From assembly GCA_964247055.1 (NCBI GenBank), contig OZ176057.1:5580001-5644000 (forward strand): 64,000 nt of DNA. Direction: 5' to 3'. The notes below the pieces were generated by a model. That model was not told the origin of the DNA and ran no database searches. It saw nothing but the letters and a program-made list of their open reading frames with translations. The translations under genes were made by a program, and so were the position numbers. Positions 13,385 to 46,050 of the stretch are shown here, one piece after another. The DNA comes from Paragordius varius. Lineage: Eukaryota > Animalia > Nematomorpha. The first letter of the stretch is position 1; the number at the start of each line of letters is the position of its first letter.

Positions 13385-14890
13385 ATGACAGATACTCCTT
13401 ACTCAGCAGCTATCATCAAAGAAACGCTTGATTAAAATTTTTGCCTTTTAACAGGGAATACGAAAAATCCTTATTGAATTTTTACAGTCTCATACCTTGG
13501 GCAAAAAAATACAATCAAAAAATTATTTTTGTGGACTTTGTTTTTTTGAAAAAAATGGCATTTTACGGGGGGAGGGGGTAAAAAAGGGCCTAATTCAAAA
13601 AAGCGAGACGACTATGTTCGGCGCGATCAAAAATAAGTAAACAAAAATTATATTCGAAATTAAATGACCCAACACGTCAGAAAATTGTCTCAAAGACACG
13701 ATTTTTGTGGACTTATGTTTTCAAAAAAAATCCGTTTATCACACGGGGTGGGCCTGAACTGGGGGCCTATTTCAAAAAAAGGGCGAAGCTATTGTCGGGG
13801 CATTCATTAATGATTATATTTTTTCGAACTTTGGATTTGAATGGGTCTACCGGTTTTCCGGAAACAGATCACAAAGTTACATGAGGAATCAGTTTTTAGC
13901 GGGTAGCTCCTTACCCAGCAGCTATCATCAAAGAAACGCCTGACTAAAATTTTTGCCTTTTAACAGGTTATACGTGGAATCCATATTGAATATTTACGTC
14001 ATACCTAGGGCGAAAAATACAATCAAAAAATTATTTTTGTGGACTTTGTTTTTTTTTGAAAAAATGTCATTTTACGGGGGTAGCGGGTAAAAGAAGGCCT
14101 AAATCAAAAAAGCGAGACGACTATGTTCGGCGCAATCGAAAATAAGTAAACAAAATCATATTTGAAATTGATTGGTCCAACACGTTCTCCGGAAAATTGT
14201 CCCAACCTGTTTTCTACACGGGGTAGGCCCAAACGGGGGACCTAATTTAAAAAAAGGGCGAAGCTATTGTCGGGACATTTTTTTATGTTTATATTTTTTC
14301 GATATTTGGATTTGATTGGGTTCACCGGTTTTCCGGAAACAGATCACAAAGTTACATGAGGAATCAGTTTTTAGCGGGTAGCTTCTTACCCACCAGCTAT
14401 CATCAAAGAAACGCTTGACTAAAATTTTTGCCTTTTAACAGGGAATACGTGGAATCCATATTATATATTTACGGTCTCATACCTAGGGCGAAAAATACAA
14501 TCAAAAAATTATTTTTGTGGACTTTGTCTTTTTTGAAAAAAATGGCATTTTACCGGGGGAGCAGGTAAAAAGAGGGCCTCAAAAAAGCGAGACGATATGT
14601 TCGGCGCAATCGAAAATATGTAAACAAAAATCATATTTGAAATTAAATGGTCCAACACGTTCTCCAGAAAATTGCCTCAAACACACGATTTTGTGGACTT
14701 TTGTTTAAAAAAAAACCAATTTTTCACACGGGGTGGGCCCAAACTGGGGGCCTATTTCAAAAAAGGGCGAAGCTATTGTGGGGGCATTCATTATAATTAT
14801 ATTTTTTCGAACTTTGGATTTGAATGGGTCTACCGGTTTTCCGGTACCAGATCACAAAGCCAGCATTTTCCATTTTTATAAATATATATA
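13385..14890 (-). repeat. Three tandem ~480-bp partial copies of the Helitron 5' region
   Basis: Marker CAGATCACAAAG recurs near 13865, 14340 and 14828; no 3' hairpin or CTAG end. Confidence 0.75.
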
Positions 14891-15649: not shown

Positions 15650-16023
15650 TCATTGACTAGTTTCAGATTTCTTGGGCAACAGGATAGCTTGAATGTTGGG
15701 AAGGACACCACCAGCTATAGTAACGCCCGAAAGTAGCTTATTGAGTTCTTCATCGTTTCGAATAGCTAATTGGGGATGTCTTGGGATGATACGAGTCTTT
15801 TTGTTGTCACGTGCCGCATTCCCAGCCAACTCAAGGACTTCAGCAGCCAAGTATTCCATCACTGCCGCTAAGTAAACTGGGGGGCATCTCCTCCAATTCG
15901 GCTGGCATAATTTCCTTTACGCAGCAATCGATGAATACGACCAACTGGGTATTGAAGTCCGGCACGATTAAATCTGCTTTTTGCCTTTCCCTTTATCTTT
16001 CCACCTTTTCCACGGCCTGTCAT
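15650..16023 (-). pseudogene. H2A: Histone H2A pseudogene (or mis-assembled copy)
   Basis: [39 protein letters not shown]...; +2 frameshift in the G6 run at 15879-15884; in-frame loss of the Gln of IAQGG; RHLQ changed to RHPQ. Confidence 0.9.
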
Positions 16024-16101
16024 TATTGTTGAATAATGTTTAAATTACGGTACAGAAGAAAAATAAAAAACGTGAAATGAAGTAAAATGTTAATGTGAAC
16101 G

Positions 16102-16127
16102 TTTATATAGCACTTATGTTTGCGCAC
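16102..16127 (-). promoter_or_regulatory. H2A promoter: TATATAAA box plus upstream GTGCGCAAACA motif
   Basis: TATA at 16102-16109, about 80 nt upstream of the ATG; the 11-mer at 16117-16127 is identical to 18363-18373 in the H2B promoter. Confidence 0.65.
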
Positions 16128-16214
16128 AAATTGTTAGCCATTAGAAAACAGGTAAAAATGTGCGCGTTTTTTGCTATATGTAATAAAATAGGTAGTTTGT
16201 TTTAGGCGCATTAA

Positions 16215-16786
16215 CACTTGGATACAACACATTCATTTTAGTCCTTCGATTTAAATTGGGGTAATTAGATACCCCAGGCCTGTTTAAAATTAAATTCTTT
16301 AAAAGATATGGAAGCAATCGAAACCATGGCAAAATTTTGCACTTATATAACATTAATTAACCGAAATACCTAAAAAAATTTATTCAAAAATAATTGATAT
16401 TAATTATTTTAAGCTAAAACTGGAAGGTAAAAAATTTGATAACGTAACATGTGTGCGATGGTATTGAAAAATATTACAAAATAAACCGCTTTTTCTATTT
16501 CTATCAATGTTAGATGTAATTTAAATAAAAAATTATTTTACTATTAAAATTAAATGAAGACGATATTTTGGAAAAATTTTGTAAAATAAAAATGGCGTCC
16601 AAGTAATTTGACATGGAACTTTTTTTCTAAAACAAAATTTTATTTAGATATTTTTGCATATTTATATAATTTTTATTAGGATAGACGCATAAATTTAAAT
16701 TGTGACCGTTTCCTTCAGTAGATTTTTAAAAATCCTAACTTATATTTAGTCTGGGGTATTTAGATACCCCAATTTGAATCGAAGTG
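16215..16786. mobile_element. 572-bp non-autonomous DNA transposon (family C; CAC...GTG ends, TTAA flanks)
   Basis: TTAA|CACTT...AAGTG|TTAA with subterminal IR TTCGATT(T/C)AAATTGGGGTA; full-length homologue at 58521-59095; partial inverted copy near 62770-62900. Confidence 0.85.
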
Positions 16787-17212
16787 TTAATACATAAAAA
16801 TGTAAAATACTTATTTTATATATTTGTTTTATAGTTATACAGCAATAATAAATGGGTAATATAAACGCAACATCCAGGATAAAAAATTTGATTCCGAATA
16901 ATAACCGTTTTTAGGATAATTAAATTATTTTAGTTCTTCTAATTCAGTGGTACTCAAACAGGAGTCCACGGGCCTCATTCGGCTCTAAAGCCCTTTTTTA
17001 AGGCCCTGTAATATTTTTTACAATAATGGGAGATTTTTTATATATTATAACTTTTAAATACCTACTTGAAATAGAATTAAAAAAATTTAAAATCCGGCCC
17101 ATCAACCCACTTTAACTAAGCCAGTCTCAACACTGCTAACAATTTGAGTTTAATGTGGAACATGGAAAACGGTTAATCCGATCATTTGAACAAATAAACA
17201 GCTATATGGAAT

Positions 17213-17454
17213 TAAGTGGGTGACGACGATAGGTTGTTAAATAAGATTCGTGTTAACGTCGGGAATAATGGAAGAAAATAAAAATAAATTTATTATATAC
17301 TCAAATTTTCGCCCAATGGCATCATCAGGAGTTGTTAATAGAATTTTCTTTGTTGTAATTTATTTTAAATTTTTTTTTATTAACAACTCCTGATGATGCC
17401 ATTGGGCGAAAATTTGAGTATATAATAAATTTATTTTTATTTTCTTCCATTATT
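17213..17454. mobile_element. 242-bp Penelope-like-element-derived insertion containing a perfect 77-bp inverted repeat
   Basis: 14-bp TSD CAGCTATATGGAAT at 17199-17212 and 17455-17468; arms 17264-17340 and 17378-17454 are exact reverse complements; each arm has a hammerhead core. Confidence 0.7.
17386..17419 (+). ncRNA. Minimal type I hammerhead ribozyme motif (mirror copy on the minus strand at 17299-17332)
   Basis: ACTC-CTGATGA-T-GCC(ATTG)GGC-GAAA-ATT-T-GAGT: conserved core, 3-bp stem II, 4-bp stem I, palindromic AATT stem III. Confidence 0.7.
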
Positions 17455-17807
17455 CAGCTATATGGAATATTTATATTGGCACTGTATAATGAATTATATC
17501 ATATGATACTTTTTATCAGGCATAGGGAAATGGTAATCAATATTAAAGGTTTCATTAACACTTTTTGTTGAAATATATATATTAAAAGTTGTACAAATAC
17601 TTAAATATAAATTTTATACGAGTTCATCTGCTTAAAATGTAGTTGAAACTGCAAAGCGAACTGACAAAATTGAAAACAAGGCGACTCGCTTTTATGTTAA
17701 AACATCTCCTATTCAACACGTTTGAAAGATTCAAAAACGTGTTATTTAAAAAATTACATACATACTGACAATAAAAAATCCATGTAATAAAAAAAATTTA
17801 TTTGGGT

Positions 17808-17823
17808 GGCCCTAAAAAGGGCC
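17808..17823 (-). promoter_or_regulatory. Histone 3' stem-loop of H4
   Basis: Minus strand CCAAAC-GGCCCTTTTTAGGGCC-ACCCA. Confidence 0.95.
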
Positions 17824-17923
17824 GTTTGGGTTATTAATCGTACAATTAATGTTGTTACGACATTTAGAATAATTTGAGACACAAGTTGGTTGAAATAAAT
17901 TAGCTGATGTGAATAAGGAGAAT

Positions 17924-18235
<312 letters not shown>

Positions 18236-18547
18236 TTTGTTTTATAAATTTGAATGAAATTTAAAACGAAAAAAGTGTGTAAGAAAAAAGGATACAGACA
18301 CGCCTTTATATACCTAGCGAGTAAAGAGAGGGAAATAATACCAATGTTTGATTGGCTCTAAAGTGCGCAAACACAAAACAATACAATATAAAAAAGGCGC
18401 AATTACATACATGTTATTGATTGGATAATGATATTAATTCATACATATTGTTATTTATTTTTATATAAATAGGTAGAATAAATTCTTGTATCATTATCGT
18501 CTTTTTTTAAGTTTACATTTTTCTTACCACGAACAAATTCATAAAAC
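18236..18547. promoter_or_regulatory. Bidirectional H4/H2B promoter
   Basis: 312-bp spacer with a TATA box for each direction (about 18305-18312 minus; about 18386-18393 plus), central CCAAT/ATTGG and GTGCGCAAACA. Confidence 0.75.
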
Positions 18548-18913
18548 ATGCCACCAAAACCAGCAGGAAAAGCCGTCAAGAAGACACATAAACCCAAAGT
18601 CGCTAAGGGAGATCACAAGAAAAGGAAATCGAGAAAGGAATCTTATGGGATTTACATTTACAAAGTATTGAAGCAAGTTCACCCTGACACAGGTATATCC
18701 AGCAAAGCCATGTCTATCATGAATTCATTCGTGAATGATTTGTTTGAACGGATTGCAGCTGAAGCTTCTCGCCTGGCTCATTACAACAAACGATCAACCA
18801 TCTCGAGTCGGGAAATTCAAACAGCTGTTCGTCTCCTCTTACCTGGCGAGTTGGCAAAACACGCCGTTTCCGAAGGCACCAAAGCCGTTACCAAATACAC
18901 TAGCTCTAAATAA
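18548..18913 (+). CDS. H2B: Histone H2B, intact, intronless
   Basis: 121-aa ORF with canonical [25 protein letters not shown]...KYTSSK. Confidence 0.97.
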
Positions 18914-18990
18914 ACCCTTTTGCCAGTATATTTACAATGTATTGACGATTATAATTGTTATGTCATTATAGACTAAAACAAACAACCAAC

Positions 18991-19006
18991 AGCCCTTTTT
19001 AGGGCT
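18991..19006 (+). promoter_or_regulatory. Histone 3' stem-loop of H2B
   Basis: CCAAC-AGCCCTTTTTAGGGCT-ACC. Confidence 0.95.
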
Positions 19007-19569
19007 ACCTATACATGTGTATTCAATAAATGTTTTGATTTTTTAATATTTGACTTATATCAATTTATATAATAGGTCTTGTGTTGTTAAGTCATATAGT
19101 ACATCATCTAATCTCTTTCTTTTCGGATTTCCAATCTCAATTTTACAAGTGTTCTTTTATTATCATAGTCTTCTGGAACTAAAATTTTTCAGAAAAATTC
19201 CTTAATATTTTAGCACGAATTACATCGTCAATTGTTCGTATTTTTTAGGTATTACCACTTATTCAATTGAAATGCATCAATATATATTGATGCGACATAC
19301 TGATAATAAAAGGGTTACGGGTAATCAACATTACAAATGAATAAATATTCTAGTTCGCATTTGAATGTTTAATAGAATTTAATTCTAGATAATAAAAATA
19401 ATTTTTATTATACTATTTTAAAATCACGCTTGAACAATTCATATTCACCCTAAAATAAATTATGTGTTTTTTATGATTAAATATTACCTATATTTTTTAT
19501 ATTATTGAAATTTCGTTTGAAATTAAAAATAATACTGAAATAATAATAAAATTAGCCATAAAGATATAT

Positions 19570-22240
19570 ACCATTTCACAGTCAATCGACACATTTTCCC
19601 AGTCAATAAAATAGGTTTGATAAAAATCAAAACAAGATACAAAAATAACTTTTACCATTATCAGCGTAATATTAGGATATTATATTTATAAAAACACAAT
19701 TATTGAATGACAATTTTCCCAAGTATATTCCAGTGCACAATCATTAATGACTTATTCTTTAAAAATGATATTTTTGGAATTTAAGATTTTTTTTAGAATT
19801 TTTTATTTTATTGATTGTTCGCATTAATATTTGCCGAATTCAAAACAGTTTTTAAACATGTCAAGTTTTTCCATAATATTGTCGGAAAAATATCTAAACA
19901 AAAAATTTTGATAAAATGTTTTTGATTAAAAAATATTTAATAAAAAGATATTTGACTAAAACAAGGTTGTCCAACTAAATGCCTTCGCGGGCCGCATTAC
20001 TCAAAAAGCACGGCATTCCGCATTCGATATATATACGGACATTCATAAATAATTTTTCGATTAGACGTAAGACTGTAAAATACAAAAATATAACAATTTT
20101 TTGTTAATTTACCAATATAATAGACTCATTCAGAATAATTGCGTAAGAAATATGAATATTACTAAGATTTTATGGGCATATTTTGCATATGGATTTCTAA
20201 AATGTTAGCGGGCCGCACAAAGATACTCGGGAGGCCACGAACCAAATGAGAAATAATATAAATTAGGTTAAAAATTATGTTTAACAATGGTTATTATTAT
20301 TAATTTTAATATTTATCCGTATCTCCTGATTTTTAGCCGCAAATAATGCGAACCATCAATAAAATAAAATTTTTTTATCTATACCATTTTCCAGTCAATA
20401 TAAACGTTTTCCCAGTCAATCGAAACATCTTCCCAATCAATCGAAACGTCCCAGTCAATCGAAACGTTTTCCCAGTCAATCGAAACATTTTCCCAGTCAT
20501 TAAAAACATTTTCCCCATCAATAAATACGTTTACCCAGTCATTAAAAACGGTTTTATTTTTGATGATAAATACACTTTTAACCATTATCAGCGTAATATT
20601 AGGATATTATTTTTTTATATAAAACACAATTATTGAATGACAATTTTCCAAATATATTCAGTGCACAATCATTAATGACTTATTTTTTAAAAATTATATT
20701 GGAATTTGAGATGTTTTTAAGATAATATTTTTTATTTTATAAATGGTTCGCATTAATATTTGCCGAATGCTTCAAAACAGTTTTTAAACATGTCAAGTTT
20801 TTCCAAATAAATCGGAAAAAATATCTAAACAAAAATTTTTTTCGATAAAAATGATTATTTAAAAATTTTTAATAAAAAGATATTTGACTAAAACAAGGTT
20901 GTCCAACTAAATGCCTTCGCGGGCCGCATTACTCAAAAAGCACGGCATTCCGCATTCGATATATATACGGACATTCATAAATAATTTTTCGATTAGACGT
21001 AAGACTGTAAAATACAAAAATATAACAATTTTTTGTTAATTTACCAATATAATAGACTCATTCAGAATAATTGCGTAAGAAATATGAATATTACTAAGAT
21101 TTTATGGGCATATTTTGCATATGGATTTCTAAAATGTTAGCGGGCCGCACAAAGATACTCGGGAGGCCACGAACCAAATGAGAAATAATATAAATTAGGT
21201 TAAAAATTATGTTTAACAATGGTTATTATTATTAATTTTAATATTTATCCGTATCTCCTGATTTTTAGCCGCAAATAATGCGAACCATCAATAAAATAAA
21301 ATTTTTTTATCTATACCATTTTCCAGTCAATATAAACGTTTTCCCAGTCAATCGAAACATCTTCCCAATCAATCGAAACGTCCCAGTCAATCGAAACGTT
21401 TTCCCAGTCAATCGAAACATTTTCCCAGTCATTAAAAACATTTTCCCCATCAATAAATACGTTTACCCAGTCATTAAAAACGGTTTTATTTTTGATGATA
21501 AATACACTTTTAACCATTATCAGCGTAATATTAGGATATTATTTTTTTATATAAAACACAATTATTGAATGACAATTTTCCAAATATATTCAGTGCACAA
21601 TCATTAATGACTTATTTTTTAAAAATTATATTGGAATTTGAGATGTTTTTAAGATAATATTTTTTATTTTATAAATGGTTCGCATTAATATTTGCCGAAT
21701 GCTTCAAAACAGTTTTTAAACATGTCAAGTTTTTCCAAATAAATCGGAAAAAATATCTAAACAAAAATTTTTTTCGATAAAAATGATTATTTAAAAATTT
21801 TTAATAAAAAGATATTTGACTAAAACAAGGTTGTCCAACTAAATGCCTTCGCGGGCCGCATTACTCAAAAAGCACGGCATTCCGCATTCGATATATATAC
21901 GGACATTCATAAATAATTTTTTGATTAGACGTAAGACTGTAAAAAAATATAACAATTTTTTTTAATTTACCAATATAATAGACTCATTCAGAATAATTGC
22001 GTAAGAAATATGAATATTACTAAGATTTTGTGGGCATATTTTGCATATGGATTTCTAAAATGTTAGCGGGCCGCACAAAGATACTCGGGAGGCCACGAAC
22101 CAAATGAGAAATAATATAAATTAGGTTAAAAATTATGTTTAACAATGGTTATTATTATTATTTTTAATATTTCATCCGTATCTATAGATTTTTAGCCGCA
22201 AATAGTGCGAACCATCAATGAAATAAAATTTTTTATCTAA
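19570..22240 (+). repeat. About three tandem ~930-bp units (left arm of X plus a hAT-like fragment)
   Basis: Identical ORF-track entries at 20346 and 21278 (offset 932); marker GTTCGCATTAATATTTGCCGAAT near 19817, 20747 and 21679. Confidence 0.9.
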
Positions 22241-22432
22241 AAACATCTGAAATCAAAAATATAACTTTTAAAGAATAGTCGTTAATGATTGTGCACTGGA
22301 ATATACTTGGAAAATCGTCATTCAATAATTGTTTATATAAAAAAATAATATCCTAATATTACGCTGATAATGGTTAAAAGTTATTTTAATATCTTGTTTT
22401 GATATTCACCATCAAAAATAAAACCGATTTTA

Positions 22433-25400
22433 TTGACTGGGAAAACGTTTCGAATGACTGGGAAAATGTTTCGATTGACTGGGAAAACGTTTCGAATGAT
22501 TGGGAAAACGTTTCGATTGACTGGGAAAACGTTTCGAATGATTGGGAAAACGTTTCGAATGACTGGAAAACGTTTCGATTGACTGGGAAAATGTTTCGAT
22601 TGACTGGGAAAACGTTTCAAATGATTGGGAAAACGTTTCGATTTGACTGGGAAAACGTTTCGATTGACTGGGAAAACGTTTCGATTGACTGGGAATACGT
22701 TTCGATTGACTGGGAAAACGTTACGATTGACTGGGAAAACGTTTCGATTGACTGGGAAAACGTTTCGATTGACTGGGAAAACGTTTCGATTGACTGGGAA
22801 AACGTTTCGATTGACTGGGAAAATGTTTCGAATGATTGGGAAAACGTTTCGATTGACTGGGAAAACGTTTCGAATGATTGGGAAAACGTTTCGATTGACT
22901 GGGAAAACGTTTCGATTGACTGGGAAAACGTTTCGATTGACTGGGAAAACGTTTCGATTGACTGAGAAAACGTTTCGATTGACTGGGAAAACGTTTCGAT
23001 TGACTGAGAAAACGTTTCGATTGACTGGGAAAATGTTTCGATTGACTGAGAAAACGTTTCAATTGACTGGGAAAATGTTACGATTGACTGGGAAAACGTT
23101 TCGATTGACTGAAACGTTTCGATTGACTGGGAAAATGTTTCGAATGATTGGGAAAACGTTTCGATTGACTGGGAAAACGTTTCGAATGATTGGGAAAACG
23201 TTTCGATTGACTGGGAAAACGTTTCGATTGACTGAGAAAACGTTTCGATTGACTGGGAAAATGTTTCGATTGACTGAGAAAACGTTTCAATTGACTGGGA
23301 AAATGTTACGATTGACTGGGAAAACGTTTCGATTGACTGAAACGTTTCGATTGACTGGGAAAATGTTTGGAATGACTGGGAAAACGTTTGACTGAGGAAA
23401 CGTTTCGATTGACTGGGAAAACGTTTCGATTGACTAGGAAAATGTTTCGATTGACTGGGAAAATGTTTCGAATGACTGGGAAAACGTTTCCTATGACTGG
23501 GAAAACGTTTCGATTGACTGGGAAAATGTTGTGAATGACTGGGAAAACGTTTCGATTGACTGGGAAAACGTTTCGATTGACTGGGAAAACGTTTCGATTG
23601 ACTGGGAAAACGTTTCGATTGACTGGGAAAATGTTTCGAATGATTGGGAAAACGTTTCGATTGACTGGGAAAACGTTTCGAATGATTGGGAAAACGTTTC
23701 GATTGACTGGGAAAACGTTTCGATTGACTGGGAAAACGTTTCGATTGACTGGGAAAACGTTTCGATTGACTGAGAAAACGTTTCGATTGACTGGGAAAAC
23801 GTTTCGATTGACTGAGAAAACGTTTCGATTGACTGGGAAAATGTTTCGATTGACTGAGAAAACGTTTCAATTGACTGGGAAAATGTTACGATTGACTGGG
23901 AAAACGTTTCGATTGACTGAAACGTTTCGATTGACTGGGAAAATGTTTCGAATGATTGGGAAAACGTTTCGATTGACTGGGAAAACGTTTCGAATGATTG
24001 GGAAAACGTTTCGATTGACTGGGAAAACGTTTCGATTGACTGGGAAAACGTTTCGATTGACTGAGAAAACGTTTCGATTGACTGGGAAAATGTTTCGATT
24101 GACTGAGAAAACGTTTCAATTGACTGGGAAAATGTTACGATTGACTGGGAAAACGTTTCGATTGACTGAAACGTTTCGATTGACTGGGAAAATGTTTGGA
24201 ATGACTGGGAAAACGTTTGACTGAGGAAACGTTTCGATTGACTGGGAAAACGTTTCGATTGACTAGGAAAATGTTTCGATTGACTGGGAAAATGTTTCGA
24301 ATGACTGGGAAAACGTTTCCTATGACTGGGAAAACGTTTCGATTGAGTGGGAAAATGTTGTGAATGACTGGGAAAACGTTTCGAATGACGTTTCGAATGA
24401 CTGGGAAAACGTTTCGAATGACTGGGAAAACGTTTCGATTGACTGGGAAAATGTTTCGATTGACTGGGAAAATGTTGTGAATGACTGGGAAAACGTTTCG
24501 AATGACGTTTCGAATGACTGGGAAAACGTTTCGAATGACTGGGAAAACGTTTCGATTGACTGGGAAAATGTTTCGATTGAATGTGAAAACGTTTCGAATG
24601 ACTGGGAAAACGCTTCCAATGACTGGAAAACGTTTCGAATGACTGGGAAAACGTTTCGATTGACTGGGAAAATGTTTCGAATGACTGGGAAAACGTTTCG
24701 ATTGACTGGGAAAATGTTTTGAATGACTGGGAAAACGTTTCGATTCACTGGGAAAACGTTTCGATTGACTGGGAAAACTCGATTGATAGGGAAAACGTTT
24801 CGATTGACTGGGAAAATGTTTCGATTGAATGTGAAAACGTTTCGAATGACTGGGAAAACGCTTCGAATGACTGGAAAACGTTTCGAATGACTGGGAAAAC
24901 GTTTCGATTGACTGGGAAAATGTTTCGAATGACTGGGAAAACGTTTCGATTGACTGGGAAAATGTTTCGATTGACTGGGAAAATGTTTCGAATGACTGGG
25001 AAAACGTTTCTTATGACTGGGAAAACGTTTCGATTGACTGGGAAAATGTTGTGAATGACTGGGAAAACGTTTCGAATGACGTTTCGAATGACTGGGAAAA
25101 TGTTTCGATTCACTGAAAAACGTTTCGATTGACTGGGAAAATGTTTGGAATGATTGGGAAAACGTTTCGATTGACTGGGAAAATGTTTCGATTGACTGGG
25201 AAAACGTTTCGAATGAGTGGGATAACATTTCGATTGACTGGGAAAACGTTTCGATTGACTGGGAAAATGTTTCGAATGACTGGGAAAATGTTTCGATTTA
25301 CTGGGAAAATGTTTCGAATGACTGGGAAAACGTTTAGATTGACTGGAAAAATGTTGTGAATGACTGGGAAAACCTTTCGATTCACTGGGAAAACGTTTCG

Positions 25401-28400
25401 ATTGAACTCGATTGATAGGGAAAACGTTTCGATTGACTGGGAAAATGTTTCGATTGAATGTGAAAACGTTTCGATTGACTGGGAAAATGTTTCGATTGAC
25501 TGGGAAAACGTTTTGATTGACTGGGAAAATGTTTCGATTGACTGGGAAAACTCGATTGATAGGAAAAACGTTTCGATTGACTGGGAAAATGTTTCGATTG
25601 AATGTGAAAACGTTTCGAATGACTGGGAAAACGCTTCGAATGACTGGAAAACGTTTCGAATGACTGGGAAAACGTTTCGATTGACTGGGAAAATGTTTCG
25701 AATGACTGGGAAAACGTTTCGATTGACTGGGATAAGGTTTCGATTGACTGGGAAAATGTTTAGAATGACTGGGAAAACGTTTCGATTCACTAGGAAAACG
25801 TTTCGATTGACTGGGAAAACTCTATTGATAGGGAAAACGTTTCGATTGACTGGGAAAATGTTTCGATTGAATGTGAAAACGTTTCGAATGACTGGGAAAA
25901 CGCTTCGAATGACTGGAAAACGTTTCCTATGACTGGGAAAAAGTTTCGAATGACTGGGAAAACGTTTCGATTGACTGGGAAAACGTTTCGATTGACTGGG
26001 AAAATGTTTCGATTGACTGGGAAAATGTTTCGAATGACTGGGAAAACGTTTCCTATGACTGGGAAAACGTTTCGATTGACTGGGAAAATTGTGAATGACT
26101 GGGAAAACGTTTCGAATGACGTTTCGAATGACTGGGAAAATGTTTCGATTCACTGAAAAACGTTTCGATTGACTGGGAAAATGTTTGGAATGACTGGGAA
26201 AACGTTTCGATTGACTGGGAAAATGTTTCGATTGACTGGGAAAACGTTTCGAATGACTGGGATAACATTTCGATTGACTGGGAAAACGTTTCGATTGACT
26301 GGGAAAATGTTTCGAATGACTGGGAAAATGTTTCGATTGACTGGGAAAATGTTTCGAATGACTGGGAAAACGTTTAGATTGACTGGGAAAATGTTGTGAA
26401 TGACTGGGAAAACCTTTCGATTCACTGGGAAAACGTTTCGATTGACTGGGAAAACTCGATTGATAGGGAAAACGTTTCGATTGACTGGGAAAATGTTTCG
26501 ATTGAATGTGAAAACGTTTCGATTGACTAGGAAAATGTTTCGATTGACTGGGAAAACGTTTTGATTGACTGGGAAAATGTTTCGATTGACTGGGAAAACT
26601 CGATTGATAGGGAAAACGCTTCGATTGACTGGGAAAATGTTTCGATTGAATGTGAAAACGTTTCGAATGACTGGGAAAACGCTTCGAATGACTGGAAAAC
26701 GTTTCGAATGACTGGGAAAACGTTTCGATTGACTGGGAAAATGTTTCGAATGACTGGGAAAACGTTTCGATTGACTGGGAAAATGTTTCGATTGACTGGG
26801 AAAATGTTTCGAATGACTGGGAAAACGTTTCCTATGACTGGGAAAACGTTTCGATTGACTGGGAAAATGTTGTGAATGACTGGGAAAACGTTTCGAATGA
26901 CGTTTCGAATGACTGGGAAAATGTTTCGATTCCCTGAAAAACGTTTCGGTTGACTGGGAAAATGTTTGGAATGACTGGGAAAACGTTTCGATTGACTGGG
27001 AAAATGTTTCGAATGACTGGGAAAATGTTTCGATTGACTGGGAAAATGTTTCGAATGACTGGGAAAACGTTTAGATTGACTGGGAAAATGTTGTGAATGA
27101 CTGGGAAAACCTTTCGATTCACTGGGAAAACGTTTCGATTGACTGGGAAAACTCGATTGATAGGGAAAACGTTTCGATTGACTGGGAAAATGTTTCGATT
27201 GAATGTGAAAACGTTTCGAATGACTGGGAAAACGCTTCGAATGACAGGAAAACGTTTAGATTGACTGGGAAAACGTTTCGATTGACTGGGAAAACCTTTC
27301 GATTCACTGGGAAAACGTTTCGATTGACTGGGAAAACTCGATTGATAGGGAAAACGTTTCGATTGACTGGGAAAATGTTTCGATTGAATGTGAAAACGTT
27401 TCGAATGACTGGGAAAACGCTTCGAATGACAGGAAAACGTTTAGATTGACTGGGAAAATGTTGTGAATGACTGGGAAAACGTTTCGATTGACTGGGAAAA
27501 CTCGATTGATAGGGAAAACGTTTCGATTGACTGGGAAAATGTTTCGATTGAATGTGAAAACGTTTCGAATGACTGGGAAAACGCTTCGAATGACTGGAAA
27601 ACGTTTCGAATGACTGGGAAAACGTTTCGATTGACTGGGAAAATGTTTCGAATGACTGGGAAAACGTTTCGATTGACTGGGAAAATGTTGTGAATGACTG
27701 GGAAAACGTTTCGAATGACGTTTCGAATGACTGGGAAAATGTTTCGATTCCCTGAAAAACGTTTCGGTTGACTGGGAAAATGTTTGGAATGACTGGGAAA
27801 ACGTTTCGATTGACTGGGAAAATGTTTCGAATGACTGGGAAAATGTTTCGATTGACTGGGAAAATGTTTCGAATGACTGGGAAAACGTTTAGATTGACTG
27901 GGAAAATGTTGTGAATGACTGGGAAAACCTTTCGATTCACTGGGAAAACGTTTCGATTGACTGGGAAAACTCGATTGATAGGGAAAACGTTTCGATTGAC
28001 TGGGAAAATGTTTCGATTGAATGTGAAAACGTTTCGAATGACTGGGAAAACGCTTCGAATGACAGGAAAACGTTTAGATTGACTGGGAAAACGTTTCGAT
28101 TGACTGGGAAAACCTTTCGATTCCCTGGGAAAACGTTTCGATTGACTGGGAAAACTCGATTGATAGGGAAAACGTTTCGATTGACTGGGAAAATGTTTCG
28201 ATTGAATGTGAAAACGTTTCGAATGACTGGGAAAACGCTTCGAATGACAGGAAAACGTTTAGATTGACTGGGAAAATGTTGTGAATGACTGGGAAAACGT
28301 TTCGATTGACTGGGAAAACTCGATTGATAGGGAAAACGTTTCGATTGACTGGGAAAATGTTTCGATTGAATGTGAAAACGTTTCGAATGACTGGGAAAAC

Positions 28401-30262
28401 GCTTCGAATGACTGGAAAACGTTTCGAATGACTGGGAAAACGTTTCGATTGACTGGGAAAATGTTTCGAATGACTGGGAAAACGTTTCGATTGACTGGGA
28501 AAATGTTGTGAATGACTGGGAAAACGTTTCGAATGACGTTTCGAATGACTGGGAAAATGTTTCGATTCCCTGAAAAACGTTTCGGTTGACTGGGAAAATG
28601 TTTGGAATGACTGGGAAAACGTTTCGATTGACTGGGAAAACGTTTCGATTGACTGGGAAAATGTTTCGAATGACTGGGAAAATGTTTCGATTGACTGGGA
28701 AAATGTTTCGAATGACTGGGAAAACGTTTAGATTGACTGGGAAAATGTTGTGAATGACTGGGAAAACCTTTCGATTCACTGGGAAAACGTTTCGATTGAC
28801 TGGGAAAATGTTTCGATTGAATGTGAAAACGTTTCGAATGACTGGGAAAACGCTTCGAATGACTGGAAAACGTTTCGAATGACTGGGAAAACGTTTCGAT
28901 TGACTGGGAAAATGTTTCGAATGACTGGGAAAATGTTTCGAATGACTGGGAATACGTTTCCTATGACTGGGAAAACGTTTCGATTGACTGGGAAAATGTT
29001 GTGAATGACTGGGAAAACGTTTCGAATGACGTTTCGAATGACTGGGAAAATGTTTCGATTGACTGGGAAAACGTTTCGAATGACTGGGATAACATTTCGA
29101 TTGACAGGGAAAACGTTTCGATTGACTGACAAAATGTTTCGAATGACTGGGAAAATGTTTCGATTGACTGGGAAAATGTTTCGAATGACTGGGAAAACGT
29201 TTCCTATGACTGGGAAAACGTTTCGATTGACTGGGAAAATGTTGTGAATGACTGGGAAAACGTTTCGAATGACGTTTCGAATGCCTGGGAAAATGTTTCG
29301 ATTCACTGAAAAACGTTTCGATTGACTGGGAAAATGTTTGGAATGACTGGGAAAACGTTTCGATTGACTGGGAAAATGTTTGGAATGACTGAGAAAACGT
29401 TTCGAATGCCTGGGAAAATATTTTGAATGAATGTGAAAACGTTTCGATTGACTAGGAAAACGTTTCGAATGACTGGGAAAACGTTTCGATTGACTAGGAA
29501 AACGTTTCGAATGACGTTTCGAATGACTGGGAAAATGTTTCGAATGACTGAGAAAACGTTTCGATTGACTGGTAAAATGTTTCGAATGACTGGGAAAACG
29601 TTTCGAATGACTGGGAAAACGTTTCGAGTGACGTTTCGAATGACTGGGAAAATGTTTCGAATGACTGGAACAACGTTTTGAATGACTGAGAAAACGTTTC
29701 GAATGACTGAATGTTTCGATTGACTGTGAAAACGTTTCGATTGACTGGTTAAATGTTTCGAATGACTGGGAAAACGTTTCCTATGACTGGGAAAACGTTC
29801 GATTGACTGGGAAAATGTTGTGAATGACTGGGAAAACGTTTTGAATGACTGAATGTTTCGAATGACTGGGAAAACGGTTCGATTGACTAGGAAAACCTTT
29901 CGATTGACTGGGAAAACGTTTCGATTGAGTGGGAAAATGTTTCGAATGACTGGGAAAATGTTTCGATTGAATGGGAAAATGTTTCGATTGACTGGGAAAA
30001 CGTTTCGAATGACTGGGCAAACGTTTCGATTGACTGGAAATGTTTCGAATGACTGGGAAAACGATTCAAATGACTAGGAAAACGTTTCGATTGACTGGGA
30101 AAATATTTCGAATGACTGGGAATACGTTTCGAATCACTGGGAAAATGTTTCGATTGACTGGAAATGTTTCGAATGACTTGGAAAACGTTTCAAATGACTG
30201 GGAAAACCTTTCAAATGATTGGGAAAATGTTTCGATTGACTGGGAAAACGTTTATTTTGACT
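22433..30262 (+). repeat. 7.8-kb satellite of 21-bp monomers (consensus TTTCGATTGACTGGGAAAACG), roughly 370 units, with higher-order repeats
   Basis: Direct reading; variant markers recur at 829, 1040 and 818 bp. Confidence 0.97.
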
Positions 30263-31333
30263 AAAAATGGTATATTTCATATTAATAATGAGTATCAGCC
30301 CGAAAACATAAATTATTTTTAGGGTCTACTTGAATATTTAAAGGGTGAATTTAAATTGTTAAGGATGAATTTGAATTGTAAATGGTATACATAAACTTAT
30401 ATCAGTGATACTCAAATAACGGCCCTAAAAGTGCGCTATTTCATGGCCATTTAAATTTTTAAGTTAGTAGTACTGCCTGATACCATTACATACCAAGTTT
30501 CCATCTTACACCTTAATTTTTATTGGTAAATTATTATTATATTTAGGAATTTCAACTTCAATTAGAATTAGAAAAAATAATTGAAATCACATTATTTTAT
30601 TTATTTGAATTACTTGACAAGATTTAAGCATTTATAAATGTATATAATTTAATGATATTTATGTGATTTTTAATAATATCTCATTAATTTCCCGAATAAA
30701 ATAAGATGGAGACATATATTACTAATTTATAATTATGTATAATTCATATTTTCGGTTACAGAAGTAATTCTACAAAAAAATGATTTAGAAGATGTCTGAC
30801 GATGTTTTAATAATAATTTGTATTATACAATATGCACATTTATATGTTGAATTCACTTAATGTGGGCAAAGTTATAATACAGTAGCGTATAGTATAAAAC
30901 AAAATTCATCCACAATTAAATAAACAATGGCCAAAAATAATTAAAATTGGTCTACCTACACAAATGAGCATACTGTAATTTTTTAAAATTACAGTAGCGG
31001 CATAAAACAATATTATTCCATAAAATAAAGTGTTTTTTTAAAAAAAACAAGGGGATATTATGGATATGTATATATACAACAAGGCTTGTTTTTTTAACAA
31101 ACATTTTTTATTATTTTATGGACTAATAATGTTTTATGCATACGCCAATGTATTTTGCACACAAGTTTTTTAACAATAAACTGCATTCAAAAATGTTTTC
31201 GCCAAGTCAAAACGGCACATGGAATTAGGAAATTGTTATAGAAAGATTAAAATTTTAATAGAATGGTCGCACGTACTCAATTGTATTTTTATATCTTAGT
31301 TTTTTATAAACCATACATCGTTAAAACCAATAT

Positions 31334-31680
31334 TATACCATTTACGAAATTCAAATTCACCCTTGAATAATTTAAATTCACCCTCGTCAATTTAAATTTA
31401 CCCTTGAACAATTTAAATTCACCCTAAAAATATATGTATTTTGGGGATAATATAACTCATCATTAATATGAAATATATTTTTATGACATTTCTTATTTTT
31501 TCAGATATTAATTTTAAACAGAATTTCATATTTTAAAATATTATAAATTAATGGAAATTTTTGATCTAATAAAACACATAATTAATTTTAGGGTGAATTT
31601 GAATTGTTTGAGGGTGAATTAGAATTGTTCAAGGGTGAATTCGATTTGTTCAAAGGTGAATTTGAATTGTAAATGGTATA
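31334..31680. mobile_element. B-family MITE (paralogous copy 44304-44653; others near 39950, 51413, 57125)
   Basis: TATACCATTTAC...GTAAATGGTATA ends with 3-4 copies of AATTCAAATTCACCCTTGAAC per arm. Confidence 0.8.
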
Positions 31681-31683
31681 TAA

Positions 31684-32935
31684 CACTGTGTGCAAAAAAG
31701 AGGGCCATTTTGATTTAATGAAAAATTTTTTTATTCATGAGATAGCTTATGACCAGCGTATTCATTGGCCCCAAAAATTTTTATTTGTGGACAACTTAGT
31801 TTTTGAAATATTGAGAGAAAATCGAAATCGGGCAAAAAGTGAAAATTAAGGATAATTAAGGATAATTCAAAAAATAATGATAAAATCTGAAATATTATCG
31901 TTTATTATCATTTTAGGAGATATTTTTATATAAATAGCTTAAAACATATAGTTAGGGTTTCTATAAAATTTCAGGTCAAAAGATGGCGTTTTTCTTTTAT
32001 CACACTTAAAAGACCAAAAAAGTTTAATGAAACTATATTAAAATAATTTTTTTATTTATTTACTACCTAAACTCACTATTAAAATCTTAAATATTTTATT
32101 CAGTAAAATAAACTTCTAAATCAAAATAAAACCAAAAATATTGTTTTTTTATTTTTGCATTTTTTTGTCATCCGGTTTATGAGTATATAAAAAATTTGTA
32201 CTGTTTTATTTTGGATTCTTAGATGATTAGGCATTATTTAGTATATAATTTATGCAAAATAGGAGTTAAAATTAGCGGAATATCAACCAACAATCCTTAC
32301 GATTTCCTGTAACAAGTCTGTTTTATGACAAATTAATATTTGTATTGCGATTTGTACGGATTGTTGGTTGATATTCCACTAATTTTCAATCCATTTTTGC
32401 ATAAATTATATACTTAATAATTCCCACTCATTTAAGAATCCAAAATAAATTATTTATACACTCATAATTCAGATGACAAAAAAATGCAAAAGGTTTTATT
32501 TATGATATAAAAGTTTATTTTCCTGAATTAAATATAACTGTTAAGATTTTAATAGTTGTTTTAGGTAGTAAATAATTAAAAAAAATTATTTTAATATAGT
32601 TTCATCAAATTTTTTTGGTCTTTTAAATGTGATAAAAGAAAAACGCCATCTTTTGACCTGAAATTTTATAGAAACCCTAACTATAAGATTTTAAGCTATT
32701 TATATATTGAAAATATCTCCTAAATGAGAATAAACGATAATATTTCAGATTTTATCATTATTTTTTGAATTATCCTTAATTATCCTTAATTTTCACTTAT
32801 TGCCCGATTTCGATTCGCTCTGAATATTTCAAAAACTAGGTCAAAAATAAAAATTTTTGCAGCAAATGAATACGCTGGTCATAAGCTATCTTATGAAAAA
32901 AAATTTTTTCGTTAAAATTTTTTTTGCACAGAGTG
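31684..32935. mobile_element. 1252-bp foldback element with CAC...GTG termini and 3-bp TAA TSD (CMC/Chapaev3-like, non-autonomous)
   Basis: About 600-bp inverted arms around a short spacer near 32310-32350; TAA at 31681-31683 and 32936-32938; empty site with a single TAA at 44654-44656. Confidence 0.85.
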
Positions 32936-33352
32936 TAATATGAGCGGATACTAAAAACTACATAATCTATAATGTGACCTCCTTATACTACTATTTTTAT
33001 AACACACTAATATTTGTTTAAATAAGGGTAAACAAGCCACATTAAAGTACATATAGGTTAAAATAAATTAATATTGTTATTTCAAAAGGTACAGTAGCGT
33101 ATGGTAACAAACAACAAATGCTTAAAATGATCATCATTTTTCTCTATGTTTTACATAATTTTGTATATATTTAGTTATAAGCAAACGTTGTTTTATGCCA
33201 TACGCTACTGTATATTATGTTAAATCAATTTAACGGATATGAACTCACATTATGTGTTGTTTGTCCTATAAATATATATATAGAGGATTATATATGCTTT
33301 AAATTTGTGGTTTGCTAGCTAATATATTAATCTAAAAATTTAAAAAAGCACA

Positions 33353-36300
33353 ATGCAAAAAATCAGATTTTTATTTTAATCATTATCTCAATCATTCCAA
33401 ACACCGTATGTGTTGCAATAATTACAGGTAAATTTGACATTATATTTTGACTATTGATAATTTTTTTACTTTATATGAGATTAGTATGCCCTTTAAGACC
33501 AGAGGCGTAGGAGCGGGGAAAGGGCGTCACTGTTGAAAGGGTGCCGAATTTTAAAATTTTTAATTTTATTTAAAAAAATAGGTATTTCAAATTTATTATT
33601 TTAACCCTTTATGAGTGGTTATGACCACGGTTTAATGTTTAAGAAAAATTAGCCTTTTTATCAAGAGTTAATAATTCCATTTGAGGGGTAGTTGTAATTT
33701 CGAGCGGAATACATAAAAAATCATCATATATATTATATAACGAGATAAATTTAAAAACGTGCTTTTGGGTGTGTATAAAAATATTTTTAAAAAAAAGTAT
33801 TTTTAGCCGTCAAAATTATTACTTTTTATATTTTTATGTGGCGAAATAAACTGGCATTCAATGTAATATTGTTATGAATAATTCATTTTAATTTAACAGC
33901 AAGCTTCCGATATTCTTTATAAATTATTTTTAAACTTAATTAAAATTTATATAAATCGTTGTAATAAAACTATATTATATATTTATATTTATATATATAT
34001 ATATATATATAGTATAAATTAAAATTATACGGACAACACGAAATACAAAGATATATATTTTTTACACCATACTTTTTAAAACCTTAATTTTTCTCATATA
34101 AGCTATTTATTTACGATTGTAAAATATAAAATTGATTGTGTTAGTTTTATATATCTCTATTTCTGGTTCAACCATTTAAAACAATGAGTTTCATTGAAAT
34201 AAATTAAAATTTAAATAGTATGGTTGTCATTTAGAAAAAAATAGTTGTTTTATATTTATACATTTTGGTATAATTTTAGTTTTTACTCAATCTATATAAT
34301 GTAACATAATTATATATTATTTTATTAGGTACTGTAACCAAATTTAGTCAATCAACTACGTTTTTGCTGGAATCTCAAAGAGATATAAATTTAACAAATA
34401 GCGAACATAGATCTTATAAATTGGTAAGCTTTAAAGTAAATTAATAATTTATTAAAACCATAAAGATATCAGAAATTATAGTGATATCAAGAACGAATAA
34501 AAAACTAAAACTACAATTTTATTATGATCTTTGGGGTAAAACAAAAATTTAAATGGTAAAATACGTAATTTTTTATTTTACTGTTGTAATCGATTGATTG
34601 GTTTACTATCAAATGAAAAAGGCGAAAATCATGGTTATCATTAAAAAAATATGGTTATTTATGATGTTTATAATTATAGAAGGGGAATCCTGGTGAGGTT
34701 TGTACTGGACAATAGATGTTAATCATAATCCAATAATTAACTTAAAAAAACCCTAAGGAAATGCTAAACAGCAATTGGATATTAAAAAAGATTTATAAAA
34801 TTCCACAAGCCTAAACAGTTGGCTTTCTAAAAAGATATTTGAATAGGATTTAACAAAGTAAAAGTCTTTTATCATACATGTTTTCTTATCAGAAAAAATT
34901 TTCATTTCATAGCTAATTCCGATAATAAGAGTTTTCACAATATGAGATACTCTAACTGTTCTCTTTTAACACTCTACTACATTTTGGGGTAGTTTTGTAT
35001 CATAGAGCCATTTGAAATTTGAATATTTTAAAAATATTCAAAATTACGGCGAATTTATAAATATGCTTTCTTTGGTCTTTTAAGCGCATTTCTGTCGCCA
35101 TTTTATTCTAATTTTTTTAAATCTCTAAAACAGGCAAATAAATGTATATTATGGTTATAAAATGTAAATAATTAACTTTAGGAAGCTTTCAAGCTACATT
35201 TTAGAACCAAAAACTTAAATATATTTTGCCTTTAATATCAGCTGTTCGTTTGAGTCGTGTTTTGTGTCCCAATTTAAGACTTTAGTAGTCACAAAACTGT
35301 GAAAATATAAGCTTTGAGTTAAATGACTAAAATTCAAAAAGTTCATTTATAAAATTGATTTCTGAGATACTAAACTATCCCAAAAGGTAAACTAGGACAA
35401 AAAAGTAAAAAGGTGATAAAGTGTATATCAATATAATTGCAAAATCAAAAAATGAAAAATTGTATTTACTCAACAATTTGTAGCCTCCGAATCCAATAAT
35501 AATTATTTTATTTGAAAAATGAGGAAGAAATCCCTGCTAAATTAGTAAGTTTATCCTCACAATACATAAATTTTTTTATGATATAACACTTAGTTGGCAA
35601 AATATGGATTCCATGGTTTTTAGCGCATTTACATTTTTTTAAAATATTATTTATGAAACATCGAATTAAAACCTTCAATTTTTATTTTACATTGCAAAAA
35701 ACTTTTTATTTCGCTTCATAAATCTTTTGGAGGGACAATTGACAATTATTTTTATAAGTGTTTGTTAGAGTTACAGGGCTATTAAATCGCCTATAAAATA
35801 AGTTTATTAGATTTGTAGCTAAATTATTTTATTATTTATAAACCAGCCTCTTGGATTTAATATAAAATCTCACAAAAAATAAAACCATAAATGCTTATTT
35901 ATTATATCACCATCTTTATTTTTATTTATGCAATAAAAACTGAATTAACGGACAAAATGTAAAGAGATAAAGACAAATTTTTGCTGAAAACAACCTCATA
36001 CATTTTAAAATCTTGATTTTTTAAAAATAACTCATTGTTTTAAATTGCAAAGTATGAAATCGATGAGTGTCTTTGTAAAACAATCTATTATATATTTTAT
36101 AGTTGTGCTTTATAAATTATACGAAAAAATTATGGTTTAAAAAGTAAGGGTGAAAAAATGTGTTTTAATATATTTACGTTATGTCCGTATAATTTTAATT
36201 TTTCTCCATATAATGGTAACCAAAAAGAAATTAAATTGTTTTGACAGTTTCTTAATTATTTAAAATAACCTCATTTGCAAAATAAAAAACAGATATGCAA

Positions 36301-42300: not shown

Positions 42301-43475
42301 TATGTTTTACGATATAGATAAAACTAGGATAATTGGGCGAAATCGAGACATGAAAACGTTAGAATTCCCATTTTATGTATGTATGATAATATATTTAATT
42401 TAACTTTTTAGTATTAAATATAAGTTAGAAATTATATAGATAAAAGGTCTAAAACATTAAGAATATTTTTTAAAAACAACCCCATACTTTTAATTTCTTG
42501 ATTTTTTCTAATATAACTCATTGTTTTAATTGGCAAATTATAAAAAAGATAATGTATATTGGTACATAATAAATAATATATTTTGTATTAAATGACTTCC
42601 ATAAAAAAAATTCGCTTCAAAATGGTTGTTTTTTGAAACCAAAATTTTTGTTTTTTTATTAGTAATTACAAGTTTTATCCGTATTATAGTGTGGATTTTA
42701 ATGAATGGTTGCTTATTTCACACTATAGTATGGCGATTCGCAACATAGGAATGTATATGGAAAAAACAATCAACAAAATATTTAAAAAACAATTTATTCC
42801 TTTTTTTTTACATACAATCCTACTAAATACACAACTATTGTGTGAAATAAGCAACCATTCATTAAAATGCATACTGTGTAATATATAAATTTTTACAGTA
42901 AAAACTGAAATTATAATACGGAGAAAACGTAAAAATATAAAGAAAAATATTTTTTTCTAAAAGATAGACATACTTTTTAAATCTTGATTTGTTTCAATAT
43001 AATTCATTTTTTAAATGGCAAAGTATGAAATAGAGATATATATATATATATATATTACTAACACAATCGATTCTAGATTTTACGATTGTAACTAAATAGC
43101 TTATAGGGAAAAAATTAAAGGTTTAAAAAGTATGGTGGTTGTTTTTTAGAGAAAAAAATATTTGTCTTTATATTTTACGTTTTTTGTCCATCCGTATAAT
43201 TTCAATTTTTACACTGTACTGTATTTTCACTTATCTAGCTTTGTCCAGCCGCCAAGTTAATTACTTATGAAATATATTGCGTCCTGGGTATTTTTCGTAA
43301 TAAAGAACCCATCTATATAAAAAATTACACGCATTTCCAGGATATGTTTAAACATATTGTACCGTATGGGACGAATGAATATATCGAATTGCAAAGTACA
43401 CTTAAAAAACAGTCTCAACACAAATACAATGCCATCGATAAACTCTTGAATGAATGGGGAAATAAATTAACATAA
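33353..43475 (+). CDS. Paralogue 1 of an unidentified secreted-protein gene; exons 33353-33427, 34329-34423, 37567-37625, 37660-37712, 37998-38068, 38465-38601, 39841-39848, 40438-40501, 41665-41723, 42318-42376, 43239-43475; 1-nt deletion in the A-run after the ATG
   Basis: The nine 3' exons are phase-compatible and stop-free, with mostly synonymous differences to paralogue 2; exon 1 is 75 nt vs 76 nt (recent lesion or homopolymer error); the exon 2 to exon 3 link is inferred. Confidence 0.65.

Positions 43476-46002: not shown

Positions 46003-46050
<48 letters not shown>

Follow-up and report, generated by a model that had tools for sequence, protein, structure and literature searches.

Probable one-sided, in-place expansion of a subterminal 21-bp repeat to a 7.8-kb array within a Tc1-like element of Paragordius varius

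The window analyzed here is a 64,000-nt stretch of the Paragordius varius genome (contig OZ176057.1, positions 5,580,001 to 5,644,000 of the forward strand). A histone H2B gene (18548 to 18913, forward strand) is followed by a B-family element that is split in two, with its left part at 19417 to 19568 and its right part, which has its own 21-bp repeats and a AAATGGTA end at 30380 to 30387, at 30273 to 30387. Between them lies an element of 10,704 bp (19569 to 30272) that begins with TACCATTT (19569 to 19576) and ends with AAATGGTA (30265 to 30272). The target TA closes the left part of the host (19567-19568) and its duplicate opens the right part (30273-30274); the stretch from 19000 to 31500 contains no N. 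These TA-flanked boundaries are exact, as an earlier note on this DNA had described them, and its statement that they interrupt a B-family element is borne out by an empty site. The left part aligns contiguously with eight uninterrupted B copies, the two flanks joined through one TA align to these copies unbroken over the junction at 79 to 82% identity, and all eight carry a single TA at the insertion point. B-family elements, with ~2,300 first-look candidates in the genome, share their termini and period with the family of the inserted element but differ from it in unit sequence.

The left half of the inserted element is triplicated with a 932-bp period. Copy 1 (19569 to 20379, forward strand) has the degenerate outer terminus TACCATTT, two repeat units, an inner arm and core; copy 2 (20382 to 21311, forward) and copy 3 (21314 to 22239, forward), the last of which runs on into the rest of the element, each have about eight units, at 20387 to 20555 and 21319 to 21487 (8.2 each by Tandem Repeats Finder). 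The unit counts of 2 to 8 given previously for "left-arm copies" hold, although the copies in question are three tandem left halves. A joint TA follows copy 1 (20380-20381) and copy 2 (21312-21313), and the target of both joints is a native internal TA at 22238-22239. Beyond it lies the inner right arm, free of repeats (22240 to 22431, reverse strand), inverted with respect to the left inner arms and 90 to 91% identical to them over aligned positions. The remainder comprises the array into which the 21-bp subterminal repeat has expanded (22432 to 30253, reverse strand) and a right terminal unit ending in AAATGGTA (30254 to 30272, reverse strand), whose outer repeat core is mutated by a 1-nt loss and substitutions.

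Tandem Repeats Finder reports 372.9 copies at period 21 for 22432 to 30253 (79% matches, rising to 85% at period 42), in agreement with the ~370 units and 7.8 kb claimed earlier for the inverted right arm. A two-unit 33-mer, allowing up to two mismatches, matched the window 238 times and 100 shuffles not once. The commonest unit of the array is the family repeat consensus. About 357 units fall into 84 types, 53 of them singletons, derived variants recur 10 to 12 times each, and there are length variants of 16 to 41 nt. On top of the two-unit sub-period, exact-word diagonal chaining revealed higher-order blocks of 0.2 to 1 kb, exactly duplicated and non-periodic in order. The youngest large duplication (26834 to 28640) spans 989 bp at an 818-bp lag with 99.9% identity; two others are perfect, 22728-23234 with 23536-24042 (507 bp) and 23191-23517 with 24020-24346 (327 bp). 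Ungapped autocorrelation of the array returned only the 21-bp ladder and no longer period, because indels blur longer periods, and in a permissive self-BLAST all segments align to all others at ~85%. Since the array is composed of exactly duplicated blocks, we infer that it grew through repeated out-of-register exchange or slippage. Open reading frames of up to 417 amino acids cross the array; they were rejected as coding sequence, being a by-product of the in-frame 21-bp unit, and the repeat arms translate as IDWENVS-type repeats.

The element belongs to a family with 644 first-look candidates genome-wide, of which at least 40 are near-full copies with 75 to 84% identity to the copy at 19569 to 30272. 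Complete copies measure 1,133 to 1,537 bp (median 1,372 bp). Their inverted arms are ~390 bp long, and ~210 bp of each consists of about 10 direct 21-bp repeats; no copy lacked the unit in either arm, and each copy examined lies between two TAs. An autonomous partner was identified at L065:492-2962, a TA-flanked element of 2,471 bp with 11 units in each arm and the family's termini. Its 316-aa open reading frame (L065:1071-2021, minus strand) matches Pfam DDE_3 (E 1.3e-17, 64.4 bits where the cut-off is 28.6), and there is a weak match to HTH_32. Within the DDE_3 match, the motifs LDE (D162), MDNA..H (D242) and NPIE (E277) were found by eye, with 34 residues between D242 and E277; comparison of this transposase with solved structures gave no match. 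Non-autonomous copies have both whole arms in common with the L065 element, at 77 to 87% identity, but not the core, and several further DDE_3 matches sit between paired repeat arms. A genome search for the mariner-type Transposase_1 (PF01359) returned only decayed fragments unlinked to the family. With TA duplications and ends in common with an element encoding a DDE/D transposase, features of the IS630-Tc1-mariner group, the family is best explained as a Tc1-like, putatively DD34E-type cut-and-paste transposon. The copy at 19569 to 30272 is, to judge by its sequence, an old, non-coding, non-autonomous member.

Other labels suit the family in part. MITEs are usually under about 800 bp. The term had been applied to this element, and its non-coding nature, the hundreds of copies and the ends of an autonomous element agree with it; the median of 1,372 bp exceeds the usual size. 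The family also has the structure of foldback elements, with long inverted arms built of subrepeats, unequal and variable in length, and little or no coding capacity. The 8- to 10-bp target duplication of Drosophila FB and Mutator-related elements is absent, however, the duplication here being TA, so the likeness to FB is that of a structural analogue only. Because the 21-bp repeats contain the CCCAGTC core of the terminal sequence, they are most likely transposase-binding sites. The different unit of the B family, with the same termini and period, fits awkwardly with one transposase recognizing one site.

The ends of the expanded element had been called intact. This is true of the terminal 8 nt; beyond them, each outer repeat carries mutations at sites that are strongly conserved across the family. 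The outer left end has eight mismatches to the family consensus in its first 40 nt, and over the same length the right end reads TT in place of CCC (a 1-nt loss) and has one substitution, as against 0 or 1 mismatch in 55 of 69 other family ends. On account of these mutations mobilization is unlikely, contrary to the earlier suggestion that the whole array could be carried as cargo; the left end, moreover, retains only two repeats, and no other sampled copy is as diverged (best identity 83%).

In 99 other family arms there are 2 to 18 units (median 10), so that an increase from ~10 to ~373 units in the right arm at 19569 to 30272 would be an amplification of about 40-fold. Unequal arms occur elsewhere too, with 9 and 18 units in L067 and 3 and 21 in the B-family copy L069. 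A 2-kb piece of the array used as a genome query gave no match longer than ~470 bp elsewhere among the best ~40 of 537 to 644 first-look candidates that were scored, a sampling under which a second array is conceivable in principle. A 30-mer diagnostic of the array has 27 of its 35 genome occurrences here, the other eight lying at seven places. The two-unit pattern occurs 1,148 times forward and 840 times reverse in the genome, and 236 times forward and twice reverse in the window; outside the window it is strand-balanced, which argues against a second large array. The array holds about 12% of the genome's well-conserved repeat dimers. At its far end it still bears the terminus and the TA of the verified empty site. 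The range of the other arms, the lack of another long array in these searches and the near-private variant unit together support the view that the 21-bp tract expanded where it stands and in one arm alone, out of the subterminal repeats of the element itself, as the earlier note had proposed. That note had also spoken of the birth of a satellite. Satellite DNA forms long homogeneous arrays, usually at several loci and with a measurable share of the genome; here there is a single 7.8-kb locus of 21-bp units without sign of spread. By unit and array size the array is minisatellite-scale and at most a proto-satellite.

The expansion had been placed after a segmental duplication, in which 31171 to 43808 recurs at 44144 to 55294 with 83 to 88% identity. 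The duplicate is preceded by a copy of the H2B 3' flank (18966 to 19130, repeated at 43950 to 44119 with 82% identity), and the array has no counterpart there. Copy B of the duplication is also missing ~1 kb around the B element that is not repeat sequence, so a deletion or complex junction is required in any case, and the missing counterpart at 43950 consequently gives no date. The proposed order stands for the latest steps only: with blocks 99.9 to 100% identical, against 83 to 88% for the segmental duplicates, the last steps of expansion appear younger and recent, and block identity dates only these.

The triplicated left half has a history of its own. Its joints read exactly ATC|TA|TACCATTT, and the native sequence is ATC-TA-AAAAC, which rules out a TATA duplication. 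Copies 1 and 3 differ by ~15 to 20% over the first ~400 nt and by ~3% over the remainder. The first ~600 nt of copy 2 are those of copy 3 (no differences in alignment columns 0 to 614) and its final ~430 nt match copy 1 without a difference (from column 500 on); copy 2 is thus a hybrid of copies 1 and 3, formed apparently by unequal crossover.

Taken together, the observations are probably best accounted for by a Tc1-like derivative inside a B element, whose right-arm tract grew in place by block-wise exchange or slippage and whose left half was triplicated. A non-autonomous derivative would have inserted at a TA within the B element. Its right-arm tract would then have grown from ~10 to ~373 units by out-of-register exchange or replication slippage, as sister or homologous tracts misaligned and multi-unit blocks of 0.2 to 1 kb were copied. 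A longer tract would make the next misalignment likelier, giving a one-sided runaway, while the left tracts remained at 2 to 8 units. In the left half, a transposase-type joint between the element end and the internal TA may have produced a dimer of left halves, and an unequal crossover between the two would have yielded the third, hybrid copy. The length of the array and the triplication are taken as assembled.

A variant of this explanation, compatible with growth in place, is possible though doubtful: nested or adjacent family members, with the second sitting in the first at its central TA, may have seeded the expansion. Recombination between the two right-arm tracts, direct repeats ~0.5 kb apart, would have removed one right end and left a single, fused tract prone to misalignment. 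The joints are indeed exact TA|TACCATTT junctions at a native TA, the divergence of copies 1 and 3 over their first ~400 nt is about that between family members, and at another place (L021:2952-2955) family members adjoin with just one TA between their ends. A scan of the array for relic internal termini (AAATGG or TACCATTT), however, found none. The right inner arm matches neither copy 1 nor copy 3 preferentially, since the two left arms have different deletions and neither of these is present in the right arm, and the near-identical right parts of these copies would demand additional gene conversion. Moreover, sister-chromatid ends, or a left-end cut repaired onto the internal TA, would yield the same joint with no deletion.

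Other readings fare less well. That transposase itself drove the growth is unlikely; under such a scheme, with the left end crippled, transposase would cut again and again at the right terminus alone, out-of-register sister repair would ratchet the tract upward, and the array would then act as a transposase sink for a family still active. If this were true, the 373-site tract could titrate transposase locally. An assembly artefact, with a short tract over-expanded or mis-joined and perhaps the 932-bp triplication as well, seems improbable too. Tandem arrays with exact internal duplicates of 0.5 to 1 kb are hard to assemble, and left-half copies 2 and 3 are identical over ~600 nt, but the diversity of unit types, the length variants and the non-periodic blocks are not those of a collapsed consensus. 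The locus is free of gaps, both flanks fit one empty site and the hybrid unit shows a clean single-crossover pattern; the assembly, 44 contigs for 110.6 Mb, suggests long reads. Far less probable than either is a pre-existing 21-bp satellite that adjoined the transposon or was captured by it, as has been proposed for tandem repeats in the Tc1/mariner MITE miDNA4 of Xenopus (PMC12628747). This is already contradicted by the data, for the unit is a subterminal repeat native to the family, present in the autonomous element as well, the array sits within the terminus and the TA duplication, and the genome searches, among the ~40 candidates scored, found no free-standing arrays.

IR/DR elements such as Sleeping Beauty and Bari3 have two to three spaced repeats per end, whereas this Tc1-like family has ~10 to 11 contiguous 21-bp repeats as putative binding sites. 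Reports on that group (PMC5224488, PMC4120734) describe a Tc1-like transposase, a TA target and long inverted repeats with direct repeats that contain the terminal-site core and serve as transposase-binding sites, a layout like that of the present family. Close in architecture is Tetris of Drosophila virilis, a non-autonomous, foldback-like element with tandem repeats in its inverted arms that vary in number between copies, and in which TIR-220 repeats were amplified into kilobase-size arrays (Dias et al. 2014, PMC4079207). Unequal crossing-over was invoked there, with large arrays believed to inactivate Tetris (PMC4079207). Tetris differs in its 220-bp unit, at most 66 copies and many heterochromatic loci, compared with 21 bp, 373 copies and one locus beside histone genes, and in its 8- to 10-bp target duplications, suggested Mutator superfamily and lack of a known autonomous partner, compared with TA and a DDE_3 partner. 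Galileo of Drosophila likewise has long foldback-like arms of variable length with internal tandem repeats, which carry extra transposase-binding sites whose binding was shown experimentally (PMC3688188, PMC3573991). It belongs to the P superfamily (THAP/P element), and for the present family binding is predicted from sequence; a one-sided expansion to several hundred copies is not described in the abstracts of the Galileo papers. The miDNA4 element, reviewed together with Xstir of Xenopus in PMC12628747, has a tandem repeat in one to many copies, and its long internal arrays are proposed to become classical satellites once the ends decay. Its repeat is thought to be captured and internal, unlike the element's own subterminal direct repeat seen here, where the ends are just starting to decay. 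A literature search for foldback elements of Tc1 type whose arms hold many subterminal repeats found none, nor was any such transposon-repeat expansion found reported for this animal lineage.

The locus is a new example of a known route, from transposon-internal repeats towards satellite DNA, as in Tetris, Galileo and miDNA4. It adds a Tc1-type case with an identified transposase to a set of examples in which foldback and P-type elements of Drosophila have so far been foremost. The accepted picture is unchanged, and a concrete locus is now at hand for measuring array-length polymorphism. One assembly shows which family donated the repeats and what its autonomous partner is, along with the insertion site, the usual repeat range and block-by-block growth, a legible snapshot of a tandem array starting from repeats already within a transposon.

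The expanded element lies where the earlier note had placed it, with its left terminus TACCATTT (19569 to 19576) preceded by a TA (19567 to 19568) and its right terminus AAATGGTA (30265 to 30272) followed by another (30273 to 30274). It is 10,704 bp long, of which 7,822 bp are array, and N is absent throughout the region. The genome is that of an animal, AT-rich, with 110.6 Mb in 44 contigs. For an empty-site test, the left flank (19417 to 19568) and the right flank (30275 onward) were fused with one TA. Over the junction, the fused flanks aligned in one piece with eight uninterrupted members of family B, a second, abundant transposon family, at 79 to 82% identity, and all eight read ATATA/TTT with a single TA at the junction point. 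The expanded element is therefore a genuine insertion, with TA duplication, into a B-family copy that now flanks it on both sides (19417 to 19568 and 30275 to 30387). Family B has the TACCATTT terminus in common with the expanded family, its right end is AAATGGTA followed by TA, and its subterminal repeats have exactly the same period of 21, in unrelated sequence. Other B-family tracts occur in the window (31348 to 31670, 38840 to 38914, 44344 to 44639 and 51422 to 51676) and elsewhere in the genome (L069:1245-1686). Further short families in other loci examined also start with TACCATTT.

With the left half and inner right arm as query, we found at least 40 near-full copies, distributed over all large contigs, at 75 to 84% identity. 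Complete family copies, all TA-flanked, measure 1,133 to 1,537 bp (median 1,372), and in each arm of about 390 bp a tract of 2 to 18 of the 21-bp units (median 10, for 99 distinct arms) adjoins the terminus. Some pairs on different contigs are 98.9 to 99.6% identical, so the family has moved recently; the window copy is its most diverged member sampled (best match 83%). At several loci, Pfam DDE_3 matches lie between paired repeat arms. The best autonomous copy (L065:492-2962, at G000:C10:2709091-2711561) is a TA-flanked element of 2,471 bp with 11 units in each arm, apparently intact, and its ORF of 316 aa has a DDE_3 match (E 1.3e-17), a weak helix-turn-helix match and motifs that suggest a DD34E arrangement. 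The short copies have both whole arms in common with this element (77 to 87% identity), around an unrelated core of about 560 bp. The window element thus derives from a Tc1-like transposon and is itself foldback-shaped and non-autonomous. At L021:2952-2955 (G000:C1, ~11,124,730), two members lie end to end with one shared TA (...AAATGGTA, TA, TACCATTT...), and at L035 a copy and its flank are tandemly duplicated (1,454 bp), with TAACGC after both right ends.

To our knowledge, described Tc1-like IR/DR elements have only two or three spaced repeats per end. In contrast, the L065 element carries about 11 contiguous 21-bp direct repeats per arm of about 390 bp, an end architecture that may be unusual for the superfamily. 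The internal repeats contain the same CCCAGTC core as the terminal sequence. Sleeping Beauty-type Tc1 elements likewise have long inverted repeats with direct repeats that share a terminal core, and there these are bound by the transposase (PMC5224488, PMC4120734). By analogy, the 21-bp unit is a putative transposase-binding site.

Tandem Repeats Finder reports one array (22432 to 30253) of period 21, with 372.9 copies and 79% matches, rising to 85% at period 42; the C/T alternation underlying this sub-period is found in ordinary family arms too. A two-unit 33-mer, with up to two mismatches, matched the window 238 times versus 0 in 100 shuffles. About 357 units were parsed into 84 sequence types, 53 of them singletons. 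The family consensus unit is the commonest, with 63 copies, and derived variants, among them one of 18 nt and several with substitutions, recur in identical form 10 to 12 times each. Internal duplications span 507 bp at a lag of 808 and 327 bp at a lag of 829 (both 100%), and 989 bp at a lag of 818 (99.9%), and many further blocks of 150 to 330 bp are duplicated at other lags. Given these recurring variants and exact duplications, the tract grew by repeated copying of multi-unit blocks, as out-of-register exchange or replication slippage would produce, and not by amplifying a single unit that then decayed for a long time. The array also contains ORFs of up to 417 aa (e.g., 22617 to 23870, minus strand, plus other stretches), because the unit is in frame and stop-free in some frames; their translations consist of 7-residue repeats, and it is almost certain that they are not genes.

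Genome-wide, the two-unit pattern has 1,148 forward and 840 reverse matches. The window holds 236 and 2 of these, and the remaining 912 and 838 are balanced, as expected of dispersed inverted arms. A 2-kb piece of the array gave no match longer than about 470 bp beyond the array among the best 40 of 537 candidates, and 27 of the 35 genome occurrences of a 30-mer diagnostic of an array variant (...CGAATGACTGGG...) are in the array, the other eight being in seven other places. The expansion in place that the earlier note had proposed is borne out, in that large arrays unlinked to the element arms were not found among the best-scored genome candidates. Among the other tracts sampled, the longest is one of 18 units at L067, where the opposite arm has 9; the B-family copy at L069 has 3 and 21. 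From such moderate asymmetry, repeat-number instability is general in both families, and the expanded locus is its extreme.

The left half (terminus, repeats, inner arm and core) is present three times, with starts at 19569, 20382 and 21314. Both joints read ...ATC, TA, TACCATTT, and the equivalent site in copy 3 reads ATC-TA-AAAAC before the right arm, so the target duplication is TA, not TATA. Exact fusion of an element end to an internal TA has the signature of a transposase-made joint, and the first dimer may have arisen by one of several candidate routes: nested insertion, an event using sister-chromatid ends, or repair of a cut end. Copy 1 has two repeat units only. Copy 2 is identical to copy 3 for its first ~600 nt and to copy 1 for its last ~430 nt. 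Such a hybrid is what one unequal crossover involving copies 1 and 3 would be expected to leave, and it is very recent.

Directly upstream is a histone cluster (15650 to 18913) with an H2A-like ORF (15650 to 15862, minus strand) and H2B (18548 to 18913), whose stop codon lies 656 bp from the element start. Tandem Repeats Finder also reports duplications at 13741 to 14674 (475-bp unit, two copies, 90%) and 178 to 1152 (320-bp unit, three copies, 72%). Positions 31171 to 43808 and 44144 to 55294 do form a tandem segmental duplication (about 12.6 kb, 83 to 88% identity), and the H2B 3' flank repeat (18966 to 19130 versus 43950 to 44119) is real as well; the flank copy, which includes a histone stem-loop-like motif, precedes the second duplicate without the H2B gene. 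The second copy lacks the expanded element and its B-family host, and from the missing counterpart the earlier note had placed the expansion probably after the duplication. Its emptiness cannot date the expansion, because about 1 kb of surrounding non-repeated sequence is missing there too. What stands is that the latest steps of growth are much younger, since identity is 99.9 to 100% for the blocks of the array and for the hybrid left copy, whereas the segmental duplicates differ by 12 to 17%; the expansion as a whole is not so dated. Nor are the ends intact, as had been supposed, beyond their terminal 8 nt: the outer left end has 8 mismatches to consensus in its first 40 nt (55 of 69 other family ends have 0 or 1), and on the right a base is lost and others are changed inside the outer repeat core. 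With mutated ends, a size of 10.7 kb and a two-repeat left end, mobilisation appears unlikely. The term satellite overstates what is one minisatellite-scale locus without spread.

That transposon-arm repeats give rise to kb-scale arrays is already known. In Tetris of Drosophila virilis, tandem repeats of foldback-type arms were amplified to that scale; the mechanism put forward was unequal crossing-over, and arrays of large size were thought to disable the element (PMC4079207). Galileo has internally repetitive arms of very variable length with extra transposase-binding sites (PMC3688188, PMC3573991), and a 2025 review describes miDNA4, a Tc1/mariner MITE with a variable satellite, and summarises the Xstir system (PMC12628747). 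The expanded element fits the pattern of Tetris, Galileo and miDNA4, an array derived from transposon-carried tandem repeats. To this, Paragordius varius adds a Tc1-type family whose transposase is identified, a 21-bp unit native to the element as its direct repeat, and a verified empty site together with a readable history of growth.
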